From NCBI RefSeq assembly GCF_006345805.1, contig NW_021835742.1:1-47873 (forward strand): a stretch of DNA of 47,873 nucleotides, given 5' to 3'. This DNA comes from Octopus sinensis (Eukaryota). The position numbers and the translations under genes were made by a program. Every line of letters starts with the position of its first letter. Within the stretch, counting starts at the first letter, position 1. The notes under the pieces were generated by a model. It made no database searches and was not told the DNA's origin. It saw only the letters and a program-made list of their open reading frames with translations. Below are positions 27,001-47,873 of the stretch, piece after piece.

Positions 27001-30000
27001 AAATGAGAGAAGAGAAAGAAAAGGAGAAATGAGATCAAGGAGAAAGTACTGGAGTAAGTTTATGAAAATGAGGAGAGAGAAAAAAAAAGAGAAATGTGAT
27101 CAAGGAGAAAGTACTGGAGTAAGTTTATGAAAAAATGAGGAGAAGAGAAAGAAAAAAGAGAAATGTGATCAAGGAGAAAGTACTGGAGTAAATTTATGAA
27201 AAATGAAGAGAAGAGAAAGAAAAGAGAAATATGTGATCAAGGAGAAAGTACTTGAGTAAGTTTTATGAAAAATGAGGATAAGAGATAAGAGAAAGAAAAA
27301 GAGAAATGTGATCAAGGAGAAAGTACTGGAGTAAGTTTATGAAAAATGAGGAGAAGAGAAAGAAAAAAGAGAAATGTGATCAAGGAGAAAGTACTGGAGT
27401 AAGTTTATGAAAATGAGAGAAGAGAAGGAAAAAAAGAGAAATGTGATCAAGGAGAATGTACTTGAGTAAGTTTATGAAAAATGAGGATAAGAGAAGAGAA
27501 AAGGAGAGAATGTGATCCAGGAGAAAGTACTGGAGTAAGTTTATAAAAATGAGGAGAAGAGAAAGAAAAAAGAGAAATGTGATCAAGGAGAAAGTACTGG
27601 AGTAATTTTATAGAAAATGAGGAGAGAGAAGAGAGAAAAAAAAAAGAGAAATGTGATCGAGAAGAAGAAACTACTGGAGTAAGTTTATGAAAAATGAAGA
27701 GAAGAGAAAGAAAAAAGAGAAATGTGATAAAGGAGAAAGTACTGGAGTAAGTTTATGAAACATTAGGAGAAGAGAAAAAAAAAAGAGAAATGTGATCAAG
27801 GAGAAAGTACTGGAGTAAGGTTATGAAAAATGAGGAGAAGAGAAAGAAAAAAGAGAAATTTGATCAAGGAGAAAGTACTGGAGTAAGTTTATGAAAAATG
27901 AAGAGAAGAGAAAGAAAAAAGAGAAATATGATCAAGGAGAATGTACTGGAGTAAGTTTATGAAAAATGAGGAGAAGAGAAAGAAAAAAGAGAAATGTGAT
28001 CAAGGAGAAAGTACTGGAGTAAGTTTATAAAAAATGAGGAGAAGAGAAACAAAAAAGAGAAATGTGATCAAGGAGAAAGTACTGGAGTAAGTTCATGAAA
28101 AATGAAGAGAAGAGAAAGAAAAAAGAGAAATATGATCAAGGAGAAATTACTTGAGTAAGTTTATGAAAAATGAGGAGAAGAGAAAGAAAAAACAAAAATG
28201 TGATCAAGGAGAAAGTACTGGAGTAAGTTTATGAAAAATGAGGAGATGAGAAAGAAATAAGAGAAATGTGATCAAGGAGAACGTACTGGAGTAAGTTTAT
28301 GAAAAATGAAGAGAAGAGAAAGAAAAAAGAGAATTGTGATCAAGGAGAAAGTACTGGAGTAAGTTTATGAAAAATGAGGAGAAGAGAAAGAAAAAGAGAA
28401 ATGTGATCAAGGAGAAAGTACTAGAGTAGTTATGAAAAATGAGGAAAAAAGAGAAAGAAAAAAAAAAAGAGAAATGTGATCAAGGAGAAAGTACTGGAGT
28501 AAGTTTATGAAAAAAGAAGAGAAAGAGAAGAAAGAGAAAAGAAATATGATCAAGGAGAATGTACTGGAGTAAGTTTATGAAAAATGAGGAGAAGGAAAGA
28601 AAAAGGAGAAATGTGATCAAGGAGAAAGTACTGGAGTAAGTTATGAAAATGAGGAGAGAGAGAAAGAAAAAAAAGAAATGTGATCAAGGAGAAAGTACTG
28701 GAGTAAGTTTATGAAAAATGAAGAGAAGAGAAGGAAAAAAGAGAAATATGATCAAGGAGAATGTACTTGAGTAAGTTTATGAAAAATGAGGATAAGAGAA
28801 AGAAAAAGGAGAAATGTGATCCAGGAGAAAGTACTGGAGTAAGTTTATATAAAATGAGGAGAAGAGAAAGAAAAAAGAGAAATGTGATCAAGGAGAATCT
28901 ACTGGAGTAATTTTATAGAAAATGAGGAGAAGAGAAAGAAAAAAGAGAAATGTGATCAAGGAGAAACTACTGGAGTAAGTTTATGAAAAATGAAGAGAAG
29001 AGAAAGAAAAAAGAGAAATGTGATAAAGGAGAAAGTACTGGAGTAAGTTTATGAAACATTAGGAGAAGAGAAAAAAAAAAGAGAAATGTGATCAAGGAGA
29101 AAGTACTGGAGTAAGGTTATGAAAAATGAGGAGAAGAGAAAGAAAAAAGAGAAATTTGATCAAGGAGAAAGTACTGGAGTAAGTTTATGAGAAATGAAGA
29201 GAAGAGAAAGAAAAAAGAGAAATATGATCAAGGAGAAAGTACTGGAGTAAGGTTATGAAAAATGAGGAGAAGAGAAAGAAAAAAGAGAAATGTGATCAAG
29301 GAGAAAGTACTGGAGTAAGTTATAAAAAATGAAGAAGAAGAGAAAGAAAAAGAAAAAAAAGAAATGTGATCAAGGAGAAAGTACTGGAGTAAGTTCATGA
29401 AAAATGAAGAGAAGAGAAAGAAAAAAGAGAAATATGATCAAGGAGAAAGTACTTGAGTAAGTTTATGAAAAAAATGAGAAGAGAAAGAAAAAACAAAAAT
29501 GTGATCAAGGAGAAAGTACTGGAGTAAGTTTATGAAAAATGAGGAGATGAGAAAGAAATAAGAGAAATGTGATCAAGGAGAACGTACTGGAGTAAGTTTA
29601 TGAAAAATGAAGAGAAGAGAAAGAAAAAAGAGAATTGTGATCAAGGAGAAAGTACTGGAGTAAGTTTATGAAAAATGAGGAGAAGAGAAAGAAAAAAGAG
29701 AAATGTGATCAAGGAGAAAGTACTAGAGTAAGTTTATGAAAAATGAGGACAAGAGAAAGAAAAAAGAGAAATGTGACCAAGGAGAAAGCACTGGAGTAAG
29801 TTTATGAAAAATGAAGAAGAGAAAGAAAAAAGAGAAAATGATCAAGGAGAAAGTACTGAGTAAGTTTATATAAATGGGAGAAGAGAAAAAAAAAGAGAAA
29901 TGTGATCAAGGAGAAAGTACTAGAGTATTTATGGAAAATGAGAGAAGAGAAAAGAAAAAGAGAAATGTGATCAAGGAGAAAGTACTTGGAGTAAGTTTCT

Positions 30001-33000
30001 GAAAATGAAGAGAAGAGAAAGAAAAAGTGAAATGTGATCAAGGGAAGTACTGGAGTAAGTTTATAAAAATGAGGAGAAGAAGAAAGAAAAAGAAAATGTG
30101 ATAAAGGAGAAAGTACTGGAGTAAGTTTATGAAAAATGAGGAGAAGAAAGAAAAAGAGAAATGTGATCAAGGAGAAAGTATTGGAGTAAGTTTATGAAAA
30201 ATGAAGAGAGAAAAAAAAAGAGAAATATGATCAAGGAGAAAGTACTTGAGTAAGTTTATAAAAAATGAGAGAAGAGAAAGAAAAAGAGAAATGTGATCAA
30301 GGAGAAAGTACTGGAGTAAGTTGATGGAAAATAAAGAGAGAAAGAAAGAAAAAGAGAAATATGATCAAGGAGAAAGTACTGGATTAAGTTTATAAAAATG
30401 GAGAAAGAGAAAAAAAAAGAGAAATATGATCAGGAGAAAGTACTTGAGTAAGTTTATAAAAATGAGGAGAAGAGAAAGAATAAAGGGATATGTGATCAAG
30501 GAGAAAGTACTGGAGTAAGTTCATGAAAAATGAGGAGAAGAGAAAGAAAAAAGAGAAATGTGATCAAGGAGAAAGTACTGGAGTAAGTTTATGAAAAATG
30601 AAGAGAAGAGAAAGAAAACAGTGAAATGTGATAAAGGAGAAAGTACTGGAGTAAGTTTATGAAAAATGAGGAGAAGAGAAAGAATAAAGGGATATGTGAT
30701 CAACGAGAAAGTACTGGAGTAAGTTCATGAAAAATGAGGAGAAGAGAAAGAAAAAAGAGAAATGTGATCAAGGAGAAAGTACTGGAGTAAGTTTATGAAA
30801 AATGAAGAAAGAGAAAGAAAAAAGAGAAATGTGATCAAGGAGAAGTACTGGAGTATTTATGAAAATGAGGAGAAGAGAAAGAAAAAGAGAAATGGTGATC
30901 AGGAGAAAGTACTGAAGTAAGTTTATTCAAATGAAGAGAAGAGAAGAAAAAAGAGAAATATGATCAAGGAGAAAGTACTGGAGTAAGTTTATGAAAAATG
31001 AGGAGAAGAGAAAGAAAAAAGAGAAACGTGATCAAGGAGAAAGCACTGGAGTAAGTTTATGAAAAATGAAGAGAAGAGAAAGAAAAAAGAGAAATGTGTT
31101 AAAGGAGAAAGTACTGGAGTAAGTTTATGAAAAATGAGAAGAGAAGGAAAAAAGAGAAATGTGATCAAGGAGAATCTAATGGAGTAAGTTTATGAAAAAT
31201 GAGGATAAGAGAAAGAAAAAGGAGAAATCTGATCAAGGAGAAAGTACTGGAATAAGTTTATGAAAAATGAGGAGAAGAGAAAGAAAAAAGAGAAATGTGA
31301 TCAAGGAGAAACTACTGGAGTAAGTTTATGGAAAATGAGGAGAAGAGAAAGAAAGAACAGAAATGTGATCAAGGAGAAAGTACTGGAGTAAGTTTATGAA
31401 AAATGAAGAGAAGAGAAAGAAAAAAGAGAAATGTGATAAAGGAGAAAGTACTGGAGTAAGTTTATGAAAAATGAGGAGAAGAGAAGGAAAAAAGAGAAAT
31501 GTGATCAAGGAGAAAGTACTGGAGTAAGTTTATGAAAAATGAAGAGAAGAGAAAGAAAAAAGTGAAATGTGATCAAGGAGAAAGTACTGGAGTAAGTTTA
31601 TGAAAAATAAGGAGAAGAGAATGAAAAAAGATAAAAGTGATCAAGGAGAAAGTACCGGAGTAAGTTTATGGAAGATGAGGAGAAGAGAACTAAAAAGGAG
31701 AAATGTGATCAAGGAGAAAGTACTGGAGTAAGTTTATGAAAAATGAGGAGAAGAGAAAGAAAAAAGAGAAATGTGATCAAGGAGAAACTAATGGAGTAAG
31801 TTTATGAAAAACGAGAATAAGAGAAAGAAAAAGGAGAAATGTGATCAAGGAGAAAGTACTGGAGTACGTTTATGGAAAATGAGGAGAAGAGAAAGAAAAA
31901 AGGAAAATGTGATCAAGGAGAAAGTACCGGAGAAAGTTTATGAAAAATGAAGAAAAGAGAAAGAAAGAACAGAAATGTGATCAAGGAGAAAGTACTGGAG
32001 TAAGTTTATGAAAAATGAGGAGAAGAGAAAAAAAAAGAGAAATGTGATCAAGGAGAAAGTACTGGAGTAAGTTTATGAAAAATGAGGAGAAGAGAAAGAA
32101 AAAAGAGAAATGTGATCAAGGAGAAAGTATGGAGTAAGTTGATGGAAAATAAGAGAAGAGAAAGATAAAAGAGAAATATGATCAAGGAGAAAGTACTGGA
32201 TTAAGTTTATGAAAAATGAGGAGAAGAGAAAGAAAAAGAGAAATGTGATCAAGGAGAAAGTACTGGAGTAAGTTTTGAAAAATGAGGAGAAGAGAAAGAA
32301 TAAAGGGATAGTGATCAAGGAGAAAGTACTGGAGTAAGTTCATGAAAAATGAGGAGAAGAGAAGAAAAAAAGAAAGTGATCAGGAGAAAGTACTGGAGTA
32401 AGTTTATGAAAATGAAGAGAAGAAAAGAAAACAAGAGAAATGTGATCAAGGAAAAGTACTGGAGTAAGTTTATGAAAAATGAGGAGAAGAGAAAGAAAAA
32501 AGAGAATATGTGATCAGGAGAAAGTACTGGAGTAAGTTCATGAAAAATGAGGAAAGAGAAAGAAAAAGAAAATGTGATCAAGGAGAAAGTACTGGAGTAA
32601 GTTTATGAAAAATGAAGAGAAGAGAAAGAAAAAAGAGAAATGTGATCAAGGAGAAAGTACTGGAGTAAGTTTATGAAAAATGAGGAGAAGAGAAAGAAAA
32701 AGAGAAATGTGATCAAGGAGAAAGTACTGAAGTAAGTTTATGAAAAATGAAGAGAAGAGAAAGAAAAAAGAGAAATATGATCAAGGAGAAAGTACTGGAG
32801 TAAGTTTATGAAAAATGAGGAGAAGAGAAGGAAAAAAGAGAAATGTGATCAAGGAGAAAGTACTGGAGTAAGTTTATGAAAAATGAAGAGAAGAGAAAGA
32901 AAAAAGAGAAATGTGATCAAGGAGAAAGTACTGGAGTAAGTTTATGAAAAATGAAGAGAAGAGAAAGAAAAAAGAGAAATGTGATCAAGGAGAAAGTACT

Positions 33001-36000
33001 GGAGTAAGTTTATGGAAAATGAGGAGAAGAGAAAGAAAAAGGAGAAATGTGATCAAGGAGAAAGTACTGGAGTAAGTTTATGAAAAATGAGAATAAGAGA
33101 AAGATAAAGGAGAAATGTGATCAAGGAGAAAGAACTGGAGTAAGTTTATGAAAAATGAGAATAAGAGAAAGATAAAGGAGAAATGTGATCAAGGAGAAAG
33201 AACTGGAGTAAGTTTATGGAAAATGAGAAGAAGAGAAAGATAAAGGAGAAATGTGATCAAGGAGAAAGTACTGGAGTAAGTTTATGAAAAATGAAGAAAA
33301 GAGAAAGAAAGAACAGAAATGTGATCAAGGAGAAAGTACTGGAGTAAGTTTATGAAAAATGAGGAGAAGAGAAAAAAAAGAGAAATGTGATCAAGGAGAA
33401 AGTACTGGAGTAAGTTTATGAAAAATGAGGAGAAGAGAAAGAAAAAAGAGAAATGTGATCAAGGAGAAAGTACTGGAGTAAGTTGATGGAAAATAAAGAG
33501 AAGAGAAAGAAAAAAGAGAAATATGATCAAGGAGAAAGTACTGGAGTAAGTTTATGAAAAATGAAGAGAAGAGAAAGAAAAAAGAGAAATGTGATAAAGG
33601 AGAAAGTACTGGAGTAAGTTTATGAAAAATGAGGAGAAGAGAAAGAATAAAGGGATATGTGATCAAGGAGAAAGTACTGGAGTAAGTTCATGAAAAATGA
33701 GGAGAAGAGAAAGAAAAAAGAGAAATGTGATCAGGAGAAAGTACTGGAGTAAGTTTATGAAAAATGAGAGAAAGAAAGAAAAAGAAGAAATGTGATAAAG
33801 GAGAAAGTACTGGAGTAAGTTTATGAAAAATGAGGAGAAGAGAAAGAATAAAGGGATATGTGATCAAGGAGAAAGTACTGGAGTAAGTTCATGAAAAATG
33901 AGGAGAAGAGAAAGAAAAAAGAGAAATGTGATCAAGGAGAAAGTACTGGAGTAAGTTTATGAAAAATGAAGAGAAGAGAAAGAAAAAAGAGAAATGTGAT
34001 CAAGGAGAAAGTACTGGAGTAAGTTTATGAAAAATGAGGAGAAGAGAAAGAAAAAGAGAAATGTGATCAAGGAGAAAGTACTGAAGTAAGTTTATGAAAA
34101 ATGAAGAGAAGAGAAAGAAAAAAGAGAAATATGATCAAGGAGAAAGTACTGGAGTAAGTTTATGAAAAATGAGGAGAAGAGAAAGAAAAAAGAGAAACGT
34201 GATCAAGGAGAAAGCACTGGAGTAAGTTTATGAAAAATGAGAAGAGAAGAGAAAGATAAAGGAGAAATGTGATCAAGGAGAAAGTACTGGAGTAAGTTTA
34301 TGAAAAATGAGAATAAGAGAAAGATAAAGGAGAAATGTGATCAAGGAGAAAGAACTGGAGTAAGTTTATGAAAAATGAGAATAAGAGAAAGATAAAGGAG
34401 AAATGTGATCAAGGAGAAAGAACTGGAGTAAGTTTATGAAAAATGAGAATAAGAGAAAGATAAAGGAGAAATGTGATCAAGGAGAAAGAACTGGAGTAAG
34501 TTTATGGAAAATGAGGAGAAGAGAAAGAAGAACATAAATGTGATCAAGAGAAAGTACTGGAGTAAGTTTATGAAAAATGAAGAAAGAGAAAAAAAAGAGA
34601 AATGTGATAAGGAAAAAGTACTGGAGTAATTTATGAAAAATGAGGAAAGAGAAGAAAAAAGTGAAATGTGATCAAGGAGAAAGTACTGGAAGTAAGTTAT
34701 GAAAAATAAGAAGAAGAGAAAGAAAAAAGTGAAATGTGATCAAGGAGAAAGTACTGGAGTAAGTTTATGAAAAATAAGGAGAAGAATGAAAAGATAAAAG
34801 TGATCAGGAGAAAGTAACCCTGGAGTAAGTTTATGGAAGATGAGGAGACGAGAACGAAAAAGATCAATGTGATAAAGGATAAAGTACTGGAGTAAGTTTA
34901 TGAAAAATGAGAGAAGAGAAAGAATAAAGAGAAATGTGATCAAGGAGAAGTACTGGAGTAGTTTATGAAAAATGGAGAGAAGAGAAAACAAAAAGAGAAA
35001 TGTGATGAAGGAGAAAAGTACTTGGAGTAAGTTTATGAAAATGAGGAGAAGAGAAACAAAAAGAAATGTGATCAAGGAGAAAGTACTGGAGTAAGTTTAT
35101 GAAAAATGAAGAGAAGAGAAAGAAAACAGGGAATGTTATCAAGGAGAATCTATGGAGTAATTTCTGAAAAATGGATAAGAGACAAAAAAGAGAAATGTGA
35201 TCACGAAAAGTACTGGATAAGTTTATGAAAAGTGAGGAGAAGAAGAAAAAAAAGAAATGTGATTAGGAGAATCTACTGGAGTAAGTTTATGGAAAATGAG
35301 GAGAAGAAAAGAAAAAAGAGAAATTGATCAGGATAAAGTACTGGAGTAAGTTTATGAAAAAGAAGAGAAGAGAAAGAACAAAGAGAAATTTGATAAAGAA
35401 AGTACTGGATATGTTTATGAAAAATGAGGAGAAGAGAAAAAAAAGAGAATTGATCAGGAGAAAGTACTGGATTAATTTATGAAAAATGAGGAGAAGAAAA
35501 GAAAAAAAGGAGAATGTGATCAGGAGAAAGTACTGGAGTAATTGATGGAAATGAAGAGAAAGAAGAAAAAAGAGAATATGATCAAGGAGATTACTGGAGT
35601 TTTTATGAAAAATGAAGAGAAGAGAAAGAAAAAGAGAAATGTGATAAAGGAGAAAGTACTGGAGTAAGTTTATGAAAAAATGATGAGAAGAGAAGAAAAA
35701 AGAGAAATATGATCAAGGAGAATGTACTGGAGTAAGTTTATTAAAAATAGGAGACGAGAAAGAAAAGAGAAATTGATCAAGGAGAAATACTGGAGTAAGT
35801 TTATGAAAAATGAAGAGAAGAGAAAGAAAAAAGAGAAATGTGATCAAGGAGAAAGTACTGGAGTAAGTATATGAAACATGAGGAGATGAGAAAGAAAAAA
35901 GAGAAATGTGATCAAGGAGAAAGTACTGGAGTAAGTTTCTGAAAAATGAAGAGAAGAGAATGAAAAAAGAGAAAAGTGATCAGGGAGAAAGTACCGGAGT

Positions 36001-39000
36001 ATGTTTATGGAAGATGAGAAGAGAACGAAAAATGAGAAATGTGATAAAGGATAAAGTACTGGAGTAAGTTTATGAAAAATGAGAAGAAGAGAAAGAATAG
36101 AGAGAAATGTGATTAAGGAGAAAGTACTGGAGTAAGTTTATGAAAAATGAGGAGAAGAGAAAGAAAAATGAAATGTGATCAAGACAAGTACTGGAGTAAG
36201 TTTATGACAATGAAGAGAAAAAAGAAAAAAGAGAATGTGATCAAGGAGAAAGTACTGGAGTTTAAGATTTTATAAATGAGGAGAAGCGAAAGAAAAAGAG
36301 GAATGTGATCAAGGAAATGTACTGGAGTAATTTATGAAAAGGAAGAGAAGAGAAAGAAAAAAGAGAATATGATCAAGGAGAAAGTACTGAGTAAGTTTAT
36401 GAAAAATGAGAGAGAGAAATAAAAAGAGAATGTATCAAGGGAGAAAGTACTGATACGTTATGAAAAATGAGGAAAGAAAAGAAAAAAGAGAAGTGATCAA
36501 GAGAAGTACTGGAGTAAGTTTATGAAAAATGAAGAGAAGAAGAAAAAAGAGAAATGTGATAAGGAGAAAGTACGGAGTAGGATTATGAACAAATGAGGAG
36601 ATGAGAAAGAAAAAGAGAAATGTGTTCAAGAGAAAAATACTGGAGTAAGTTTATGAAAAATGAAGAGAAGAGAAGAAAAAAAAGAAATGTGATCAAGGAG
36701 AAGTACTGGAGTATTTTATGGAAGATGAGAGAAGAGAACGAAAAGGAGAAATGTGATAAGGGATAAGTACTGTAAGTAAGTTTATGAAAAATGAGGAGAA
36801 TAAAGAATAAAGAGAAATGTGATCAAGGAGAATGTACTGGAGTAAGTTTATGAAAAATGAGAGACGAGAAAGAAAAAGTAAATGTGATCAAGGAGAAAGT
36901 ACTGGAGTAAGTTTATGAAAAATGAGGAGAAGAAAAGAAAAGAGAAATTGATCGAGGAGAAAGTACTGGAGTAAGTTTATGAAAAATGAAGAGAAGAGAA
37001 AGAAAAGAGAAATATAATCTAGGAAAGTACTGGAGTAAGTTTATTAAAAGAGAGAAGAGAAAGAAAAAAGAGAATGTGATAAAGGATAAAGTACTGAGTA
37101 AGTTTATGAAAAATTGAGGAGACGAGAAAAAAAAGAGATGTGATCAAGGAGAAACTACTGGAGTAAGTTTATGGAAAATGAGGAGAAGAGAAAGAAAGAA
37201 CAGAAATTTGATCAAGGAGAAGTACTGGAATAATTTTTATGAAAAATGGAGAAGAGAAAGAAAAAAGAGAAATGTTATCAAGGAGAAACTAATGGAGTAA
37301 GTTTGAAAAAAATGAGAGATAAGAGAAAAAAAGGAGAAATGTGATCAAGGAGAAAGTACTGGAGTAAGTTTATGAAAAATGAGGAGAAGAGAAAGAAAAA
37401 GAGAAATGTGATCAAGAGAAAGTACTGGAGTAAGTTTATGAAAAATGAGGAGAAGGAAAGAAAAAGAGAAATGTGATCAAGGGGAAAGTACTGGAGTAAG
37501 TTTATGAAAAATGAAGAGAAGAGAAAGAAAATGAGAAATATGATCAGAGAGAAAGTACTGGAGTAAGTTTATGAAAAATGAGGAGAAGAGAAAGAAAAAA
37601 GAGAAATGTGATCAAGGAGAAACTAATGGAGTAAGTTTATGAAAAATGAGGATAAGAGAAAGAAAAAGGAGAAATGTGATCAAGGAGAAAGTACTGGAGT
37701 AAGTTTATGAAAAATGAGGAGAAGAGAAAGAAAAAAGAGAAATGTGATCAAGGAGAAACTAATGGAGTAAGTTTATGAAAAATGAGGATAAGAGAAAGGA
37801 AAAGGAGAAATGTGATCAAGGAGAAAGTACTGGAGTACGTTTATGGAAAATGAGGAGAAGAGAAAGAAAAAAGAAAAATGTGATCAAGGAGAAAGTACCG
37901 GAGTAAGTTTATGAATAATGAAGAGAAGAGAAAGAAAAAAGAGAAATGTGATAAAGGAGAAAGTACTGAGTAAGTTTATGAAAAATGAGGAGAAGAGAAA
38001 AAAAAGAGAACGTGATCAAGAAAGTACTGGAGTAAGTTTATGAAAATGAGGAGAAGAGAAGAAAAAAGAGAAATTTGATCAATGAGAAAGTAACTGGAGT
38101 AAGTTGATGGAAAATAAGAAGAGAAGAGAAAGAAAAAGAGAAATGTGATAAAGGAGAAAGTACTGGAGTAGTTTATGGAAAATGAGGAGAAGAAAAGAAT
38201 AAAGGGATATGTGATCAAGGAGAAAGTACTGGAGTAAGTTCATGAAAAATGAGGAGAAATAAAGAAAAGAGAAATGTGATCAGGAGAAAGTACTGGAGTA
38301 AGTTTATGAAAAATGAGAGAAAGAAAGAAAAAAGAGAATGTGATCAAGGAGAAAGTACTGGAGTAAGTTTATGAAAAATGAGGAGAAGAGAAAGAAAAAG
38401 AGAAATTTGATCAAGGAGAAAGTACTGGTAAGTTTATGAAAAATGAGGAGAAGAGAAAGAAAAAAGAGAAATGTGATCAAGGAGAAAGTACTGGAGTAAG
38501 TTTATGAAAAATGAAGAGAATAGAAAGAAAAAAGAGAGATGTGATCAAGGAGAAAGTACTGGAGTAAGTTGATGGAAAATGAAGAGAAGAGAAAGAAAAA
38601 AGTGAAATATGATCAAGGAGAAAGTACTGGAGTAAGTTTATGAAAAATGAGGAGAAGAGAAAGAAAAAAGAGAAATATGATCAAGGAGAAAGTACTCGAG
38701 TAAGTTTATGAAAAATGAAGAGAAGAAGAAAAAAGTGAAATATGATCAAGGAGAAAGTACTGGAGTAAGTTTATGAAAATTAGGAGAAGAGAAAGAAAAA
38801 GAGAAATATGATCAAGGAAAAGTACTCGAGTAAGTTTATGAAAAATGAAGAGAAGAGAAAACGAAAAAGTGAAATGTGATAAGGAGAAAGTACTGGATTA
38901 AGTTTATGAAAATGAGGAGAAGAGAAAGAAAAAGAGAAATGTGATCAAGGAGAATGTACTGGAGCAATTTTATGAAAAATGAGAAGAGAAAGAAAAAAGA

Positions 39001-39173
39001 GAAATGTGATCAAGGAGAAAGTAATGGAGTAAGTTTATGAAAAATGAAGAGAAGAGAAAGAAACAAGGGAAACGTGATCAAGGAGAAAGTACTGGAGTAA
39101 GTTTATGAAACATGAGGAGAAGAGAAAGAAAAAAAGAGAAATGTGATCAAGGAGAAAGTACTGGAGTAAGTTT
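1..39173 (+). repeat. 68-bp tandem satellite array, purine-rich strand on + (about 575-585 monomers, estimated)
   Basis: TGATCA recurs at 194 and 262 and GTACTGG at 10264 and 10332, i.e. a 68-bp period. The same monomer continues uninterrupted to 39173. Copy number is estimated from length/68, not counted. Confidence 0.99.
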
Positions 39174-41308
39174 CTCCTTGATCACATTTCTCCTTTTTCT
39201 TTCTCTTCTCCTCATTTTCCATAAACTTACTCCAGTAGTTTCTCTTTGATCACATTTCTCTTTTTTCTTTCTCTTCTCCTCATTTTCCATAAACTTACTC
39301 CAGTAGTTTCTCTTTGATCACATTTCTCTTTTTTCTTTCTCTTCTCTTTATTTTTCATAAACTTACTCCAGTACTTTCTCCTTGATCATATTTCTCTTTT
39401 CTCATTCTCTTCTCCTCATTTTTCATAAACTTACTCCAGTACTTTCTCCTTGATCACATTTATCTTTTTATTTTCTCTTCTCCTCATTTTTCATAAACAT
39501 ACTCCAGTACTTTCTCCTTTATAGCATTTCACTTTTTTCTTTCCCTTCTCTATATTTTTCATAAACTTACTCCAGTACTTTCTCCTTGATCACATTTCTC
39601 TTTTTTCTTTCTCTTCTCCTAATTTTCCATAAACTTACTCCAGTAGATTCTCCTTGAACACATTTTTCTTTTTTCTTTCTCTTCTCCTCATTTTTCATAA
39701 ACTTACTCCAGTACTTTCTCCTTGATCACATTTCTACTTTTTCTTTCTCTTATCCTCATTTTTCATAAACTTACTCCATTAGTTTCTCCTTGATCACATT
39801 TCTCTTTTTTCTTTCTCTTATCCTCATTTTTCATAAACTTTTTCCAGTACTTTCTCCTTGATCACATTTCTCTTTTTCTCTTTCTCTTCTCCTCATGTTT
39901 CATAAACTTACTCCAGTACTTTCTCCTTGATCACGTGTCTCTTTTTTCTTTCTCCTCTTCTCATTTTTCATAAACTGACTCCAGTAATTTCTCCTTGATC
40001 ACATTTCTCTTTTTTCTTTCTCTTCTCCTCATTTTTCATAAACTTTCTCCAGTACTTTCTCCTTGATCATATTACTCTTTTTTCTTTCTCTTCTCTTCAT
40101 TTTTCATAAATTTACTCCAGTACTTTCTCCTTGATCACATTTCTCTTTTTTTCTTTCTCTTCTCCTCATTTTTCATAAACTTACTCCAGTACATTCTCCT
40201 TGATCACATTTCTCTTTTTCTCTTTCTCTTCTCCTCATGTTTCATAAACTTACTCCAGTAAATTCTCCTTCATCACATTTCACTTTTTTCTTTCTCTTCT
40301 CTTCATTTTTCATAAACTTACTCCAGTACTTTCTCCTTGATCACATTTCTCTTTTTTCTTTCTCCTCTTCTCATTTATCATAAACTTACTCCAGTAGTTT
40401 CTCCTTGATCACATTTCTCTTTTTTTTTCTCTTCTCCTCATTTTTCATAAACTTACTCCAGTACTTTCTCCTTGATCATATTTCTCTTTGTTCTTTCTCT
40501 TCTCTTCATTTTTCATAAACTTAGTCCAGTACTTTCTCCTGAATCACATTTCTCTCTTTTCTTTCTCTTCTCCTCATTTTTCATTAACTTACTCCAGTAC
40601 TTTCTGCTTGATCACATTTCTCTTTTTTCTTTCTCTTCTCCTCATTTTTCATAAACTTACTCCAGTACTTTCTCCTTGATCACATTTCTCTTTTTTCTTT
40701 CTCTTCTCCTCATTTTCCATAAACTTACTCCAGTAGATACTCCTTGATCACATTTCCCTTTTTTATTTCTCTTCTCGTCATATTTCATAAACTTACTCCA
40801 GTATTTTCTCCTTGATAACATTTCTCCTTTTTCTTTCTCTTCTCCTCATTTTCCATAAACTTACTCCAGTAGATTCTCCTTGATCACATTTCTCTTTTTT
40901 CTTTCTCTCCTCTTCATTTTTCATAAACTTACTCCAGTACTTTCTCCTTGATCACATTTCTCATTTTTCTTTCTCTTCTCCTCATTTTCCGTAAACTTAC
41001 TCCTGTACTTTCTCCGGGATCACATTTCTCTTTTTTCTTTCTCTTCTCCTCATTTTTCATAAACTTACTCCAGTACTTTCTCCTTGATCACATTTCTCTT
41101 TTTTCTTTATCTTCTCCTCATTTTTCATAAACTTACTCCAGTACTTTCTCCTTTATCACATTTCTCTTTTTTCTTTCTCTACTCTTCTTTTTACATAAAC
41201 TTAATCCAGTACTTTCTCCTTGATCACATTTCTCTTTTTTCTTTCCCTTCTCCTCATTTTCCATAAACTTACTCCAGTAGATTCACCTTGATCACATTTC
41301 TCTTTTTT
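39174..41308 (-). repeat. Inverted block of the same 68-bp satellite (about 31.5 monomers)
   Basis: Sequence switches to the reverse complement (TTTCTCCTTGATCACATTTCTC...) at 39171-39174 and back (CTGGAGTAAGTTT) at 41309. 32 TGATCA-equivalent positions were counted by eye. Confidence 0.99.
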
Positions 41309-44300
41309 CTGGAGTAAGTTTATGAAAAATGAAGAGAGGAGAAAGATAAAAAGAGAAATGTGATCAAGGAGAAAGTACTGGAGTAAGTTTATGAAACATG
41401 AGGAGAAGAGAAAGAAAAAAAGAGAAATGTGATCATGGAGAATGTACTGGAGTAAGTTTATGATAAATGAAGAGAAGAGAAAGAAAATAGGGAAATATGT
41501 TCAAGGAGAAAGTACTGGAGTAAGTTTATGAAAAGTGAGAAGAGAACGAAAAAGAAATGTAATCAAGGAGAAAGTACTGGAGTAAGTTTATGAAAAATGA
41601 AAGAAGAGAAAGAAAAAATGAAATGTGATCAAGGAGAAATACTGGAGTAGTTTATGAAAATGAGGAGAAGAGAAAGAAAAATGAGAAATGTGATCAAGGA
41701 GAATGTACTGGAGTAAGTTTATGAAATATGAGGAGAAAAGAAAGAAAAAAGAGAAATGTGATCAAGGAGAAAGTACTGGTGTAAGTTTATGGAAAATGAA
41801 GAGAAGAGAAAGAAAAAAGAAAAATGTGATCAAGGAGAAAGTACTGGAGTAACTTTATGAAAAATGAGGAGAAGAGAAAGAAAAAAGAGAATGTGATAAA
41901 GGAAAAACTACTGGAGTAAGTTTATGAAAAATGAGGAGAAGAGAAAGAAAAAAGAGAAATGTGATCAAGGAGAAAGTACTGGAGAAAGTTTATGAAAATG
42001 AGGAGAAGAGAAAGAGAAAAGAGAAATGTGATCAAGGAGAAAGTAGAGGAGTAAGTTTATGAAAAATGAGGAGAAGAGAAGAAAAAAGAGAATGTGATCA
42101 GGAGAAACTACTGGAGTAAGTTAATGGAAAATGAGGAGAAGAGAAAGAAAAAGAGAAATGTGATCAAGGAGAAGGTACTGGAGTAAGTTTATGAAAAATG
42201 AAGAGAAGAGAAGAAAAAAGAGAAATTGTGATCAGGAGAAACTAATGGAGTAAGTTTATGAAAAATGAGGATAATAGAAAGAAAAGGAAAAGTGATCAAG
42301 GAGAAAGTACTGGAGTAAGTTATGAAAAATGAGATAAGAGAAAGAAAAAAGAGAAATGTGTTCAAGGAGAATCTACTGGAGTAAGTTTATGGAAAATTAG
42401 GAGAAGATAAAAAAAGAGAAATGTGATCAAGGAGAAACTACTGGAGTAAGTTTATGGAAAATGAGGAGAAGAGAAAGAAAAAAGAGAAATGTGATCAAGG
42501 TGAAGGTACTGGAGTAAGTTTATGAAAAATGAAGAGAAGAGAAAGAAAAAAGAGAAATGTGATAAAGGAGAAAGTACTGGAGTAAGTTTATGAAAAATGA
42601 GGAGAAGAGAATGAAAAAGAGAAATGTGATCAAGGAGAATGTACTGGAGTAAGTTTATGAAAACTGAAGAGATGAGAAAGAAAAAGGGAATATGATCATG
42701 GAGAAAAGTACTGAGTAGTTTAATAAAATGAGTAGAAGATAAAGAAAAAAGAGATATGTGATCAAAGAAACTACTCGAGTAAGTTTATGGAAAATGAGGA
42801 GAAGAGAACGAAAAGGAGAAATGTGATCAAGGAGAAAGTACTGGAGTAAGTTTAATGAAAAATGAGAAAGAACGAAAAAGAGAAATGTGATCAAGGAGAA
42901 AGTACTGGAGTAAGTTTTGAAAAATGAAGAGAAGAGAAAGAAAAAAAGAAAATGTGATCAAGGAGAAGTACTGGAGTAATTTTTATGAAGAATGAGGAGA
43001 AAGAAAGAAAAAAGAGAAACGTGATCAAGGAGAAAGTACTGGAGTAATTATATTAAAATGAAGAGAAGAGAAACAAAAAAGAGAAATATGATCAAGGAGA
43101 AAGTACTGGAGTAGTTTATGTGAAAAAAAATGAGGAGAAGAAAAGAAAAAGAGAAATGTAATCAAGGAGAAAGTACTGGAGTATTTTATGAAAAATGAAG
43201 AGAAGAGAAAGAAAAGTAAACTGTGACAAGGAGAAGTACAGAGTAAGTTATGAAAAATCAGGAGAAGGAAAGAAAAAGAGAAATGTGATAAAGGAGAAAG
43301 TTCTGGATTAAGTTTATGAAAAATAAAGAGAAGAGAAGGAAAAAAGAAAAATGTGATCAAGGAGAAAGTACTGGAGTAAGTTTATGAAAAATGAGGAGAA
43401 GAGAAAGAAAAAAGAGAAATGTGATCAAGGAGAATGTACTGGAGTAAGTTTATGAAATATGAGGAGAATAGAAAGAAAAAAGAGAAATGTGATCAAGGAG
43501 AAAGTACTGGTGTAAATTTATGGAAAGTAAAGAGAAGAGAAAGAAAAAAGAGAAATGTGATCAAAGAGAAACTACTGGAGTAAGTTTATCAAAAATGAAG
43601 AGAAGAGAAAGAAAAAAGAGAAATGTGATAAAGGAGAAAGTACTGGAGTAAGTTTATGAAAAATGAGGAGAAGAGAAAGAAAAAAGAGAAATGTGATAAA
43701 GGAAAAAGTACTGGAGTAAGTTTATGAAAAATGAGGAGAAGACAAAGAAAAAAGAGAAATGTGATCAAGGAGAAAGTACTGGAGTAAGTTTATGAAAAAT
43801 GAAGAGAAGAGAAAGCAAAAAGAGAAATGTGTTCAAGGAGAAACTACTGGAGTAAGTTTATGAAAAATGAGGATAAGAGAAAGAAAAAGGAGAAATGTGA
43901 TCAAGGAGAAAGTGCTGGATTAAGTTTATGAAAAATGAAGAGAAGAGAAAGAAAAAAGAGAAATGTGATCAAGGAGAAAGTACTTGAGTAAGTTTATGAA
44001 AAATGAGGAGAAGAGAAAAAAAAAGAGAAATGTGATCAAGGAGAATGTACTGGAGTAAGTTTATGGAAACTGAGGAGAAGGTAAAGTAAAAGAGAAATGT
44101 GATCAAGGAGAAATCTGGAGTAGTTTATGATAAATGAAGAAAGAGAAAGAAATAAGAGAATATGATCAAGAGAAGTACTGGAGTAAGTTTATGAAAAATG
44201 AGTAAGAAAAAAGAGAAATGTGATCAAGGAGAAAGTACTGGAGTAGTTTATGAAAATGAAGAGAATAGAAGAAAAAAAGAAATGTGATCAAGAGAAAGTA

Positions 44301-44432
44301 CTGGAGTAAGTTTATGAAAAATGAAGAGAAGAGAAAGAAAAGTGAAATGTGATAAAAGAGAAAGTACTGGAGTAAGTTTATCAAAAATGAGGAAAGAGAA
44401 AGAAAAAAGAGAATGTGATCAGGAGAAAGTAC
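41309..44432 (+). repeat. 68-bp satellite, forward orientation (about 46 monomers)
   Basis: Forward monomers resume at 41309 and end abruptly at ...GGAGAAAGTAC (44432). Confidence 0.98.
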
Positions 44433-44612
44433 AACAGCATCACAAAAACAACAACAAACCACAAGAAAATGGAGGGGGAGAAGAAGAAGAAAAAGAAGAA
44501 GAAGAAGTAAAGGAAAGAAGGCGACAGAAGAAAAAGAAGAAGAAGAAGGAAAGAAAAGAAGAGGAAAGGAGAAAAAGCAGAAAAAGAGAAGAAGAAGAGA
44601 AGAAGAAGAAAA
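44433..44612 (+). repeat. Degenerate (CAA)n followed by (GAA)n-rich low-complexity tract
   Basis: AAAAACAACAACAAACC followed by GAAGAAGAAGAAAAAGAAGAAGAAGAAG-type sequence. Confidence 0.85.
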
Positions 44613-44960
44613 GTCAAGAGGAAATTATTTCGTGGAAGTGTGGATAAATAACCACACGGCACCACAGAATAAAGAGAACAATGTGAAACAAAAAACAGTA
44701 GAAAAAACATAAGTATTATATTAACACTGAAGTCACACTCATACATATATGAACATACACGTTTTCAGGAATAGAATTTTGATGCAGACGATTATCAACT
44801 GCCAGTCATTGTCATGTTCAGACACAATCAAATAAATATAACACGAATATGGAAAGTGATTATGACTTCCAGTAATAGGGAGTGAGAATAAATAGAAATC
44901 AGGGAATATTTAATTAAAGACACATTATATTCCTCATGTATAAATGACAACATTGAAAGG

Positions 44961-44966
44961 ACTTAC
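44961..44966 (-). promoter_or_regulatory. 5' splice donor GTAAGT of the downstream LRR exon
   Basis: Plus-strand ACTTAC at 44961-44966 reads GTAAGT on minus, immediately after the 72-nt exon (...ACTCT|GTAAGT). Confidence 0.9.
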
Positions 44967-45038
44967 AGAGTCTGTAAACTGTGAAGGTCTTCAAACGTTC
45001 CTTCTTCAATCCTCGAAATTTTATTGTTCCAGAGATAT
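44967..45038 (-). CDS. Internal 72-nt coding exon encoding one typical 24-aa leucine-rich repeat: (L)YLWNNKISRIEEGTFEDLHSLQT(L)
   Basis: Minus strand reads ttcctgcttcag|ATATCTCTGGAAC...CAGACTCT|gtaagt. Exactly 72 nt, phase 2-2, no stop. Translation fits LxLxxNxIxxIxxxxFxxLxxLxxL. Confidence 0.93.
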
Positions 45039-45066
45039 CTGAAGCAGGAAACAATATTTCTTAGTT
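45039..45066 (-). promoter_or_regulatory. 3' splice acceptor with pyrimidine tract and branch-point-like ACTAAG
   Basis: Minus strand reads ...AAACTAAGAAATATTGTTTCCTGCTTCAG|, with the CTAA motif about 23 nt upstream of the AG. Confidence 0.8.
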
Positions 45067-45150
45067 TGACATAGTATGGAATTGGCATAAAATATTTAAA
45101 TATTGTTCTTGAGGTATAGGAAGAAAATCATAGGTAAATAAAATGACAAT

Positions 45151-45424
45151 AGAAGAAGAAGAAGAAGAAGAAGAAGAAGAAGAAGGAGAAGAAGGAGGAG
45201 GCGGAGAAGAAGAAGAAGAAGAAGAAGAAGAAGAAGGAGAAGGAGTAGAAGAAGAAGAAGAAAAAGAAGAAAAAAAGAAGAGAAGAAGAAAAGAAGAAGA
45301 AGAAGAAGAAGAAGAAGAAGAAGAACAACAACAACAACTACAACAACAACAAAACAACAACAGCACAACAAGATCAAGTAGAACAAGATGAAGAAGAAGA
45401 AGAAGAACAAGAAGAAGAAGAAGA
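45151..45424 (+). repeat. Compound microsatellite (GAA)n/(GGA)n/(CAA)n/(GAA)n inside the short intron
   Basis: Long GAA runs at 45151-45325, CAA run at 45326-45371, GAA again at 45390-45424. Confidence 0.95.
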
Positions 45425-45514
45425 TAGTGCACTCTGAAAGTTTATTCGTTTCTGAGAGAAAATATATCAGCATCAATGTATACATTCAGATAATAGTATT
45501 AAGAAACTGAACGA

Positions 45515-45520
45515 ACTTAC
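45515..45520 (-). promoter_or_regulatory. 5' splice donor GTAAGT of the upstream LRR exon
   Basis: Plus-strand ACTTAC at 45515-45520 (...TCATT|GTAAGT on minus). Confidence 0.9.
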
Positions 45521-45592
45521 AATGACTTTAAATTCGAAAGCCCCGTGAAGGTCCCTTCTTTGATGGTTGCAATGTTGTTGTGGGCAAAATTT
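45521..45592 (-). CDS. Internal 72-nt coding exon encoding one typical 24-aa leucine-rich repeat: (x)NFAHNNIATIKEGTFTGLSNLKS(L)
   Basis: Minus strand reads ctttctttactgctatag|AAATTTTGCCCAC...AAAGTCATT|gtaagt. Exactly 72 nt, phase 2-2, no stop. Same LRR register as the neighbouring exon, including the shared EGTF motif. Confidence 0.93.
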
Positions 45593-45622
45593 CTATAGCA
45601 GTAAAGAAAGAGTAAAATAGAT
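45593..45622 (-). promoter_or_regulatory. 3' splice acceptor (TAG) with polypyrimidine tract
   Basis: Minus strand reads ...ATCTATTTTACTCTTTCTTTACTGCTATAG|. Confidence 0.85.
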
Positions 45623-45698
45623 TATATGGAAAATATTAGTGATACAACATCAAACGCCGTGGCTTTAGAATGAAAGGATGAAAAAGAAAAGAGATAAC

Positions 45699-45713
45699 GA
45701 AGAAGAAGAAGAA

Positions 45714-45757
<44 letters not shown>

Positions 45758-45830
45758 GGAAGAAGGAGAAGAAGAGGAAAAAGGAGAAGAAGAAGAAGAA
45801 GAAGAAGAAGAAGAAGAAGAAGGAGGAGGA
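45699..45830 (+). repeat. (GAA)n microsatellite with GAG/GGA interruptions
   Basis: Direct reading of the GAAGAAGAA... runs. Confidence 0.95.
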
Positions 45831-46105
45831 ATAAGGAGGTGGAGGAGGGGAGTAGAAGCCGAGAAGGAGGAAAAGAAATATAAAGGGGAAGTGGAAGATA
45901 AAAAGTAATCAGAGGATGCAGAAAATAAGGGAGTAAGTTGATGAAAAAGAAGCAGAAGAAGAAGAATGAGGAATAAAGGGGAGGTGAGGAGAGGAGGCGC
46001 TAGGAGACGGTAGGGAAGGAGGGAGTGATGTAGGAGCGGGTAGGGGATGAGAGAGGTGGTGCATGAGCAGGAACAGGAGGACAAGGAGAATAGGAGGAAG
46101 ATGTT
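45831..46105 (+). repeat. Purine-rich low-complexity transition zone with a decayed satellite-like fragment
   Basis: GGAG/GAGG-rich sequence. GGAGTAAGTTGATGAAAAA at 45930-45948 matches the satellite core. Confidence 0.6.
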
Positions 46106-47873
46106 GAAGAGAATAAAAAGGAGAAATGTGATCAAGGAGAAAGTACTGGAGTAAGTTTATGGAAAATGAGAAGAAGAGAAAGAAAAATGAGAATGTGATC
46201 AAGGAGAAAGTACTGGAGTAAGTTTATGAAAAATGAGTAGAAGAGAAAGAAAAAGGAGAAATGTGATCAAGGAGAAAGTACTGGAGTAAGTTTATGGAAA
46301 ATGAGAAGAGAAAGAAAAATGAGAATGTGATCAAGGAGAAAGTACTGGAGTAAGTTTATGAAAAATGAGGAGAAGAGAAAGAAAAAGGAGAAATGTGATC
46401 AAGGAGAAAGTACTGGAGTAAGTTTATGGAAAATGAGAATAAGAGAAAGATAAAGGAGAAATGTGATCAAGGAGAAAGAACTGGAGTAAGTTTATGAAAA
46501 ATGAGAATAAGAGAAAGATAAAGGAGAAATGTGATCAAGGAGAAAGTACTGGAGTAAGTTTATGGAAAATGAGAATAAGAGAAAGATAAAGGAGAAATGT
46601 GATCAAGGAGAAAGTACTGGAGTAAGTTTATGAAAAATGAGGAGAAGAGAAAGAAAAAGGAGAAATGTGATCAAGGAGAAAGTACTGGAGTAATTTTATG
46701 GAAAATGAGAAGAAAAGAAAAAAAAAAAAGAGAATGTGATCAAGGAGAAAGTACTGGAGTAAGTTTATGAAAAATGAGTAGAAAGAAAGAAAAAGGAGAA
46801 ATTGATCAAGGAGAAAGTACTGGAGTAAGTTTACGGAAAATGAGAAGAAGAGAAAGAAAAATGAGAATGTGATCAAGGAGAAAGTACTGGAGTAACTTTA
46901 TGGAAAATGAGAAGAAGAGAACGAAAAAGGAGAATGTGATCAAGGAGAAAGTACTGAAGTAAGTTTATGAAAAATGAGAAGAGAAAGAAAAAGGAGAAAT
47001 GTGATCAAGGAGAAAGTACTGAAGTAAGTTTACGGAAAATGAGGAGAAGGGAAGGAAAAAGGAGAAATGTGATTAAGCAGAAAGTACTGGAGTAAGTTTA
47101 CGGAAAATGAGAAGAAAAGAAAGAAAAAGGAGAAATGTGATCAAGGAGAAAGTACTGGAGTAAGTTTATGGAAAATGAGAAGAAGAGAAAGAAAAAGGAG
47201 AAATGTGATCAAGGAGAAAGTACTGGAGTAAGTTCATGAAAAATGAGGAGAAGAGAAAGAAAAATGAGAAATGCGATGAAGGAGAAAGTACTGGAGTAAG
47301 TTTACGGAAAATGAGGAGAAGAGTAAGAAAGTAGAAATGTGATCAAAGAGAAAGTACTGGAGTAATTTTATGGAAATGTAAGAAGAAAAGAAAAAGGAAG
47401 AATGTGATCAAGGAGAAAGTACTGGACAAGTTTACGGAAAATGAGGAGAAGAGAAGAAATTATAAATGTGATCAAGAGAATACTGGAGTAAGTTTTGAAA
47501 AATGATGAGAAGAGAAAGAAAAAGGAGAATGTGATCAAGGAGAAAGTACTGAAGTAAGCTTACGGAAATTAGGAGAAGAAAAGAAAAAGGAGAAATGTGA
47601 TTAACAAAAGTACTGGAGTAAGTTTACGGAAAATGAGAAGAAGAGAAAGAAAAAGGAGAAATGTGATCAAGGAGCAGGTACTGGAGTAAGTTTACGGAAA
47701 ATGAGAAGAGGAGAAAGAAAAAGGAGAAATGTGATCAAGGAGAAAGTACTGAAGTAAGCTTACGGAAAATGAGAAGAAGAGAAAGAAAAAGGAGAAATGT
47801 GATTAAGCCGAAAGTACTCGAGAAAGTTTTACGGAAAATGAGGAGAATAGAAAGAAAAAGGAGAAATGTGATC
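46106..47873 (+). repeat. 68-bp satellite resumes, same orientation (about 26 monomers), runs off the window end
   Basis: GAAGAGAATAAAAAGGAGAAATGTGATC from 46106. AAAAAGGAGAAAT-type monomers with frequent TTTACGG variant. Confidence 0.98.

Follow-up and report, generated by a model that had tools for sequence, protein, structure and literature searches.

Do two short protein-coding exons lying inside a long satellite array belong to a working gene, or are they pieces of one that has been cut off from its other exons? This question is raised by NW_021835742.1, an unplaced contig (C12213 below) of the Octopus sinensis RefSeq assembly GCF_006345805.1, which comprises 13,516 contigs and 2.72 Gb. 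The contig was analysed in its entirety (47,873 bases) and is referred to here as the window. A 68-bp tandem repeat spans positions 1-44432 and 46106-47873 of the window, and the two exons, each of 72 nt and here named A and B, reside on the minus strand of the island between these arrays. We conclude that the exons are leucine-rich repeat (LRR) cassettes of an octopus-specific expansion of LRR-bearing adhesion G-protein-coupled receptors (GPCRs), and that the satellite probably derives from the intronic proto-repeat of that same family, expanded at a single locus that the assembly does not resolve; for exon identity, family assignment and satellite origin taken jointly, we estimate a probability of about 0.8. 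Whether the exons are used today is a separate matter, on which the evidence is divided.

Two LRR exons in a non-satellite island

Exon A (45592..45521, minus strand) encodes NFAHNNIATIKEGTFTGLSNLKS and is a cassette of the type designated A, and exon B (45038..44967, minus strand) encodes YLWNNKISRIEEGTFEDLHSLQT and belongs to type B. A pyrimidine tract closing with YAG lies before both exons, and GTAAGT lies after them; the acceptor and donor strings are TTACTGCTATAG and GTAAGTTC for exon A and TTCCTGCTTCAG and GTAAGTCC for exon B. A Leu codon (TTA/CTN) is split at the exon borders: its third base opens each exon, and the first two bases of the next such codon close it. The spliced exons are frame-compatible and translate as NFAHNNIATIKEGTFTGLSNLKS-L-YLWNNKISRIEEGTFEDLHSLQT. 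Both repeats comprise 24 residues, including the split Leu, and contain the LxxLxLxxNxI core, in which the second Leu is replaced by Phe in exon A. The joined peptide matched the Pfam profiles LRR_8 (52.9 bits, E=3.1e-14) and LRR_4 (49.4 bits), the cut-off being 27 bits for each.

The original prediction, which had been made from the letters of the window alone, described the two 72-nt exons with their YAG/GTAAGT borders, the 482-nt intron, the split Leu and the spliced peptide, and was confirmed in every one of these details; its assignment of the repeats to the 24-residue extracellular class agrees with the LRR_8 match. The pattern YAG-72nt-GTAAGT occurs on the minus strand of the window at exons A and B only. 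Outside an inverted block of the satellite, the two exon donors are also the only GTAAGT sequences on that strand. A bacterial or contaminant origin was ruled out, as the assembly is that of a 2.72-Gb animal genome and the matches obtained are named Octopus sinensis.

The intron between the two exons (45520..45039, minus strand; 482 nt) contains a (TTC/TTG)n microsatellite at 45151-45424. Unique intron sequence extends upstream of exon A (45593..46105, minus strand), including a (TTC)n run at 45699-45822 and an 83-nt satellite-like piece at 45884-45966, and downstream of exon B (44433..44966, minus strand), where it is colinear with paralogues. The non-satellite island thus consists of 44433-45883 and 45967-46105. 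Apart from the exons, the only features seen in the island on either strand were open frames of low complexity that traverse the (TTC)n runs; neither an Rfam family nor a transposon-like open reading frame was found in it. No first exon, terminal LRR, LRRCT or later exon was found on the window contig, which carries two cassettes only.

Paralogous cassette arrays in the genome

In a DNA search of the assembly, the island, including its introns, matched more than 170 places with 70-87% identity. These places are distributed over C29 (in several clusters), C25, C5, C1 and many small unplaced contigs. The matches cover introns as well as exons, with 75-87% DNA identity for the two together, and homology limited to the exons is already excluded. 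The 482-nt intron is colinear with paralogous introns at 80-86% identity, and the island is colinear over its full length with C1622:12296-15436. The best paralogue of the island in the assembly is 80-86% identical, and no second copy was found there. Matches to the A-B peptide comprised ~120 single open frames of 72 nt, each terminated by the TAA of the donor.

The cassettes fall into types with distinct consensus sequences. Type A is characterized by NNIATIKEGTFTGLSNLK, with the acceptor TTACTGCTATAG and the donor GTAAGTTC, and type B by NNKISRIEKxMFQDLHSLx, with the acceptor TTCCTGCTTCAG and the donor GTAAGTCC; the splice strings of exons A and B are identical to these. Types C and D are also present among the loci examined. 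The order of A followed by B, with an intron of 520-850 nt, recurs in paralogues L011, L013, L030 and L032. Exons A and B are accordingly identified as the type A and type B cassettes, in that order, of one LRR adhesion-GPCR paralogue. With equal codon phase at both ends of a cassette, any number of cassettes can be spliced or duplicated in frame, and the family grows by tandem duplication of exon-plus-intron units.

Of the copies located by DNA homology, 53 of 61 cassettes are intact and have common splice consensus sequences, in a sample that was chosen partly via protein matches and is biased towards intact copies. The array most similar to that of the window, located on C29 (3.213-3.233 Mb), was read without this bias and contains 13 intact and 6 broken cassettes (19 in total); duplicate contigs carry the same breaks. 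The paralogue on C29 is encoded on the minus strand and begins with an exon for the signal peptide and LRRNT (3234673-3234482), followed by the 19 cassettes (3233310 to 3213005), a terminal LRR (at ~3207642), LRRCT (at ~3202499), and Cys-rich exons and further modules (below 3199674). The first exon of the family has ~28-31 close copies in the assembly, redundant contigs counted. In the region C29:3182001-3199700, post-LRR exons encoding WTKSFVFRLI... and SQLRRNISQVLNK... are found twice in tandem (at ~3195967/3192837 and ~3188038/3184779), indicating that the duplication of exon units is not limited to the LRR part.

Domain architecture and identity of the family

NCBI models of the family are named 'LRRC15-like', 'slit homolog 1/3-like' and 'uncharacterized LOC115230659', and a model from O. 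vulgaris is named 'adhesion GPCR G6-like'. A search of 1.84 billion representative proteins with the non-LRR part of the O. vulgaris model yielded only 52 relatives, which marks the post-LRR region as a lineage-restricted ectodomain module. In Pfam scans, long relatives of this module contain LRR_8, GPS and 7tm_2, one of them with an additional Death domain, and the relatives that reach the membrane domain carry GPS followed by 7tm_2, not 7tm_1. The signals for HRM and GAIN in the family are weak and below their cut-offs. EGF, LamG and CTCK had no match in any family model or relative scanned.

The predicted order of the family, a composite of several gene models and relatives, is a signal peptide and LRRNT exon, a variable number of 72-nt exons encoding one LRR each, a terminal LRR, LRRCT, a Cys-rich module, weak HRM and GAIN, GPS, and 7tm_2. 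Immediately 3' of the LRR arrays examined, the heuristic genome list contained no 7tm_2 exon, the gene on C29 having been followed to 3,182,001, and for this reason the link of the family to a seven-transmembrane (7TM) domain rests on the relatives of the post-LRR module. The Cys-rich module that follows LRRCT is ~90 residues long, ends in CTGCCVGHLCN (P0001, P0005, P0039 and P0121) and has no Pfam match. Its CCxxHLCN ending is reminiscent of Ly6/uPAR domains and gives a tentative lead.

The predicted domain set matches that of the octopus-specific adhesion-GPCR 'group 3' reported by Ritschard et al. 2019 (PMC6408891), in which LRRs are present in 5 of 22 sequences and a Death domain in one. 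Genes of this group are co-localised, show signs of positive selection, and are expressed in the axial nerve cord, suckers and skin (PMC6408891). The family is therefore best regarded as an octopus-specific LRR adhesion-GPCR expansion that is already annotated by NCBI and published at the family level, and the notion of a hidden new type of gene has to be given up. Membership of the Slit or LGR genes, to which the exons had been likened, is likewise not supported, as EGF, LamG and CTCK are unmatched and 7tm_2 with GPS is found instead of 7tm_1; the 'slit-like' names of the family models reflect LRR similarity only. The likeness in exon modularity itself holds as a comparison of gene architecture (PMC6642158).

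Cassette usage varies among the annotated models. Isoforms X3 and X6 of the gene on C25 differ only in the cassettes included, and the gene model P0039 leaves out intact cassettes. Exon-modular LRRs have been linked to alternative splicing (PMC6642158), which fits the differences between X3 and X6. Two further observations concern annotation. The O. vulgaris model P0015, named 'E3 ubiquitin-protein ligase MIB2-like', fuses an ankyrin-repeat C-terminus to the signal peptide, LRRNT and six cassettes of the family and is probably a chimeric prediction across neighbouring genes. On C10 (79.8-80.6 Mb), dozens of intronless 7tm_2 open frames of ~650-700 aa form a 0.8-Mb cluster, which appears to be a separate expansion of secretin/adhesion-type GPCRs unrelated to the window, perhaps the methuselah-like 'group 4' of PMC6408891.

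Diversification of the cassettes

Amino-acid entropy in the cassettes is highest at positions 1, 3, 4 and 23. These are the x positions of LxxLxLxxN, which are solvent-exposed on the concave sheet. In 18 type A cassettes, the diversity of these hypervariable (HV) codons at codon positions 1, 2 and 3 is 0.71, 0.47 and 0.39, respectively, compared with 0.13, 0.03 and 0.18 for the framework codons and 0.10-0.21 for the flanking introns. The ratios of nonsynonymous to synonymous substitution rates (dN/dS; Nei-Gojobori) are 1.49 in HV and 0.27 in framework codons of type A, and 3.70 and 0.38, respectively, in those of type B, all of these selection statistics being based on few codons, non-independent pairs and a sample biased towards intact copies, with gene conversion unmodelled. 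The direction is nonetheless clear: the framework codons are maintained by purifying selection, and the four ligand-facing codons of the concave, ligand-binding sheet diversify.

The same distribution of differences is seen in the window. Relative to its closest copy, a type A cassette (A') on contig C9682 (see below), exon A differs at 6 of 12 HV nucleotides and at 3 of 60 framework nucleotides (Fisher p=4e-4). No stop, frameshift or splice-site loss is present in the 144 nt and four splice dinucleotides of the two exons, and the framework residues are kept, with two exceptions: exon A has a Phe, and exon B contains the stretch EEGTFED. The introns of the island are 14-20% diverged from those of the nearest paralogues. 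When neutral drift of 15-20%, equivalent to this intron divergence, was simulated, both exons stayed intact in 0.5-1.6% of the simulations. The rarity of this outcome indicates that constraint acted on the A-B pair during most of its past; it does not reveal the state of the pair today.

Origin of the 68-bp satellite

Tandem Repeats Finder (TRF) reported a period of 68, ~586 copies and 87% matches, plus further blocks. In the sense of the gene, one array (46106..47873, plus strand) is located upstream of the exons and reaches the contig end, and the other lies downstream of them. The latter is composed of a segment at 11301..44432 (plus strand) and a segment at 1..11300 (plus strand) that is at least 99% identical to C9682 at ~14,500-25,760 on the opposite strand. 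Within the first of these segments, an inverted block of ~31 monomers (39171-41310) interrupts an otherwise uniformly oriented array, the cause being an inversion of part of the array or a mistake of the assembly. The composition of the array shifts at ~11300-13300, with a GC content of 0.33 below and 0.31 above, and a variant unit of 78 nt was detected by TRF at 13072-13241. Close to this shift, the near-identity to C9682 begins.

Monomer-like pieces of 80-200 nt (1-3 units; 72-88% identical) are present in the introns of many paralogues. Their orientation relative to the gene is constant, and they are typically located ~1-2 kb after the B cassette and ~1 kb before the A cassette. On both sides, alignments with paralogues leave the island without loss of colinearity and continue through the first 100-200 nt of the satellite. 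Upstream of exon A, window positions 46193..45872 align at 85% to C1622 (L013), so that this part of the intron natively carries a short form of the repeat. On the other side, the alignment of L026 reaches 44323, i.e. 110 nt inside the satellite, and that of L011 reaches 44392.

An exhaustive genome-wide search for a monomer 26-mer (at most one mismatch) gave 755 matches, all of them on four unplaced contigs, namely the window (359), C11665 (293), C9682 (77) and C6512 (26), and a control pattern gave none; heuristic DNA searches with satellite queries had missed C9682 and C11665. C11665 (32,573 bases) and C6512 (5,488 bases) consist purely of the 68-bp repeat. Neither matched the window or the other contig at an identity of 94-96% or above, and they probably represent other stretches of the same locus. 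In total, the satellite occupies at least 85 kb of non-redundant sequence in the assembly. Arrays at many loci or chromosomes were not encountered, and outside the four contigs only pieces of 1-3 units inside family introns were found.

On this sequence evidence, the satellite is most likely the intronic proto-repeat of the family itself, expanded at a single locus, rather than a genome-wide satellite. A proto-repeat of 1-3 units belongs to the normal makeup of the family introns that flank A-B units, its orientation relative to the gene being constant; at one locus it would have expanded in place to at least 85 kb, breaking the assembly into four unplaced contigs. The description of the exons as buried in satellite DNA is accurate in that the repeat covers both sides of the island (1-44432 and 46106-47873); what surrounds them appears not to be generic heterochromatin but the repeat of the family's own introns. 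The literature search yielded no specific description of an octopus satellite of this kind or of the cassettes.

Contig C9682 and the assembly fork

C9682 (25,774 bases) contains a first exon of the family at 7890-8081, with an open frame that is 89% identical to residues 1-64 of P0005. The type A cassette A', the closest copy of exon A, is found at 12005-12076 and is followed by a 1.1-kb intron without a B cassette, after which the satellite extends from 13190 to the contig end. From ~14,500 onwards, C9682 is at least 99% identical to window positions 11,300..1 on the opposite strand, the differences being mostly small indels. Both contigs stop at the same point, and the orientation from gene to satellite is alike in both. 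A signal-peptide and LRRNT first exon that may serve the window copy is thus present on C9682, in the same orientation and entering the same satellite.

The two contigs form an assembly fork, which could correspond to two haplotypes, two very recent paralogues or a false join. Through the fork, the window exons are assigned to a locus with a proper and correctly oriented gene start, and the transcription unit that begins on C9682 probably contains the pair or borders closely on it. A haplotype lacking the A-B island would be the product expected of unequal crossing-over between the flanking arrays.

Is the exon pair part of a working gene?

That the exons are still spliced into functional mRNA is, judged from the sequence evidence, just under an even chance. 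In its fullest form, this account places them in the interior of an LRR receptor gene that is intact and expressed and has very large, satellite-filled introns, a tentative reading to which we would give somewhat less than even odds. It draws on the intactness of both exons and their family-consensus splice signals, on the concentration of differences from the nearest paralogue in ligand-facing codons, on the first exon that enters the same satellite in the same orientation on C9682, and on the varying combinations of cassettes in NCBI isoforms. The 5' and 3' exons are absent from the contig, however, and the A-B pair is in no recorded protein of the lengths searched, the assembly showed no way out of the satellite, and an acceptor-like motif is present in each downstream monomer. 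The competing account, which we also regard as possible at rather less than an even chance, is that A and B are orphan pseudo-exons, i.e. a unit stranded by satellite expansion or unequal crossing-over too recently to have decayed. In the closest array, on C29, 6 of 19 cassettes are broken, with the same breaks in duplicate contigs; the P0039 model skips intact cassettes; and C9682 reaches the same satellite without an A-B island, so that at least one haplotype or copy does without these exons. As the framework of exon A is only 3 of 60 nucleotides from its closest copy, its intactness also says little about present constraint. The complete lack of stops, frameshifts and splice-site losses speaks against this account, as do the simulations, in which neutral drift on the scale of the intron divergence rarely left both exons intact.

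Two other explanations concern the locus as a whole. The assembly may be partly artefactual, with the island being real and the 44-kb array or the join near 11.3 kb representing a false overlap between satellite reads, and with C12213 and C9682 being redundant or chimeric renderings of one locus; such a problem could accompany either a working gene or orphan exons. The sharing of 11.3 kb at 99% or more with mostly small indels and a common stop point, the shift in base composition near 12 kb and the unplaced status of all four satellite contigs are compatible with such an artefact; nevertheless, we consider it unlikely, since the island has no second copy (its best paralogue being 80-86% identical) and its flanks enter the satellite where paralogues carry the proto-repeat, and it would in any case bear on the size of the array, not on the nature of the exons. 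An extremely improbable explanation is that the exons are chance open frames, or were captured and spread by a transposable element, as might be suspected from the repeat-rich setting and the occurrence of the exon-plus-intron unit on several chromosomes. The LRR_8 match (E=3e-14), the ordered same-strand arrays between signal-peptide and LRRCT exons, the codon-position pattern indicative of selection, and the lack of a transposon-like open reading frame and of Rfam matches in the island all contradict it. The part concerning chance is effectively refuted: a spurious open frame is ruled out by the LRR_8 score and by the uniqueness of the YAG-72nt-GTAAGT pattern on the strand, and the more than 170 paralogous places lead to the same conclusion.

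Several points, in addition to the limits of the selection statistics given above, weigh against the explanation favoured here. In exon A, the conserved Leu of xLxxN is replaced by Phe, and the EEGTFED stretch of exon B is unusual. The A-B peptide was found in no protein of 27-86 aa or 165-525 aa among 5.8 billion sequences, and the junction search at 165-525 aa returned only three paralogous proteins. C9682 and the window converge on the same satellite end and do not abut, and could therefore be two haplotypes or two recent paralogues, or one of them could be a chimera. No exit from the satellite into 3' exons (LRRCT to 7tm_2) was found on the four satellite contigs, which may reflect the assembly. 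The monomer (consensus TGGAGTAAGTTTATG...) contains GA|GTAAGT on the plus strand, and 500 GTAAGT sequences are present in the window; on the minus strand, which is that of the gene, the monomers carry a pyrimidine tract and the acceptor-like motif CTTACTCCAG (397 exact copies), and these motifs could act as decoy acceptors that divert splicing. Of the proposal that A and B are internal exons of an intact animal LRR receptor gene, the receptor family therefore stands, with adhesion-GPCR relatives containing GPS and 7tm_2; the word 'intact' is unproven, given the presence of two cassettes only, the 6 of 19 broken cassettes in the closest array and the absence of the pair from the proteins searched.

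Comparison with known systems and implications

The closest counterparts of the window copy are the octopus 'group 3' genes and NCBI models, with which it shares exon and intron DNA homology, 24-residue cassettes, identical splice consensus sequences and relatives with LRR, GPS and 7tm_2. It differs from them in having two cassettes only, no first or last exons, no gene model, and an intron repeat expanded over tens of kilobases. The ectodomains of LGR/relaxin receptors are exon-modular. The same property has been described for Slit by Little et al. 2002, as cited in PMC6642158. The octopus family resembles both in that each short exon encodes a single LRR and has equal phase at its two ends, which allows cassettes to be gained, lost or skipped in frame, and differs in that EGF, LamG and CTCK are unmatched and that the membrane part in its relatives is 7tm_2 with GPS (class B2).

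The vertebrate receptors ADGRA2 and ADGRA3 (GPR124/125) possess an LRR ectodomain, a hormone-receptor-like region, GAIN/GPS and a secretin-type 7TM domain. This layout is shared by the octopus family, in which, however, no Ig domain was seen, an additional Cys-rich module is present, HRM and GAIN are below cut-off, and a lineage-specific tandem expansion has occurred. In lampreys, the germline LRR cassettes of the variable lymphocyte receptors combine an invariant framework with hypervariable residues on the concave face. The octopus cassettes likewise form arrays with an invariant framework and a hypervariable concave face, but they are bordered by canonical AG/GT splice sites inside genes with ordinary first and last exons, with no hint of somatic assembly. 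It is conceivable, if improbable, that the family is a germline diversity system in which in-frame cassettes with four diversifying, ligand-facing codons are combined by alternative splicing into many adhesion-GPCR ectodomains per gene, following a Dscam-like logic on an LRR scaffold, and in which the expanded intronic proto-repeat could drive unequal crossing-over that adds or removes cassettes. On that reading, C9682 without the A-B island and the window with it could represent a segregating example. The khipu satellite of common bean is reported to be interleaved with fast-evolving nucleotide-binding LRR (NB-LRR) clusters (PMC3797529 and PMC6102362). Khipu is similar in being a tandem satellite interleaved with a rapidly duplicating LRR cluster and a possible substrate for unequal recombination, and dissimilar in being a plant subtelomeric repeat located between genes at many loci, whereas the octopus repeat is intronic and private to one locus.

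What was supposed to be a hidden gene in heterochromatin is thus better described as an unannotated cassette pair of a known octopus family at a poorly assembled locus. The LRR ectodomains of these octopus-specific adhesion GPCRs appear to be built from arrays of single-LRR cassettes. Their diversity is focused on four concave-face codons, with framework and introns remaining similar, a pattern expected of recognition receptors under diversifying selection. The locus further suggests that a satellite of at least 85 kb can arise from an intron repeat of 1-3 units at a single locus and break the assembly there, so that the numbers of cassettes and genes counted for this family in current assemblies are probably underestimates. 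Two points deserve renewed attention from specialists: the hypervariable codons of the cassettes and the expansion of the satellite at a single locus.

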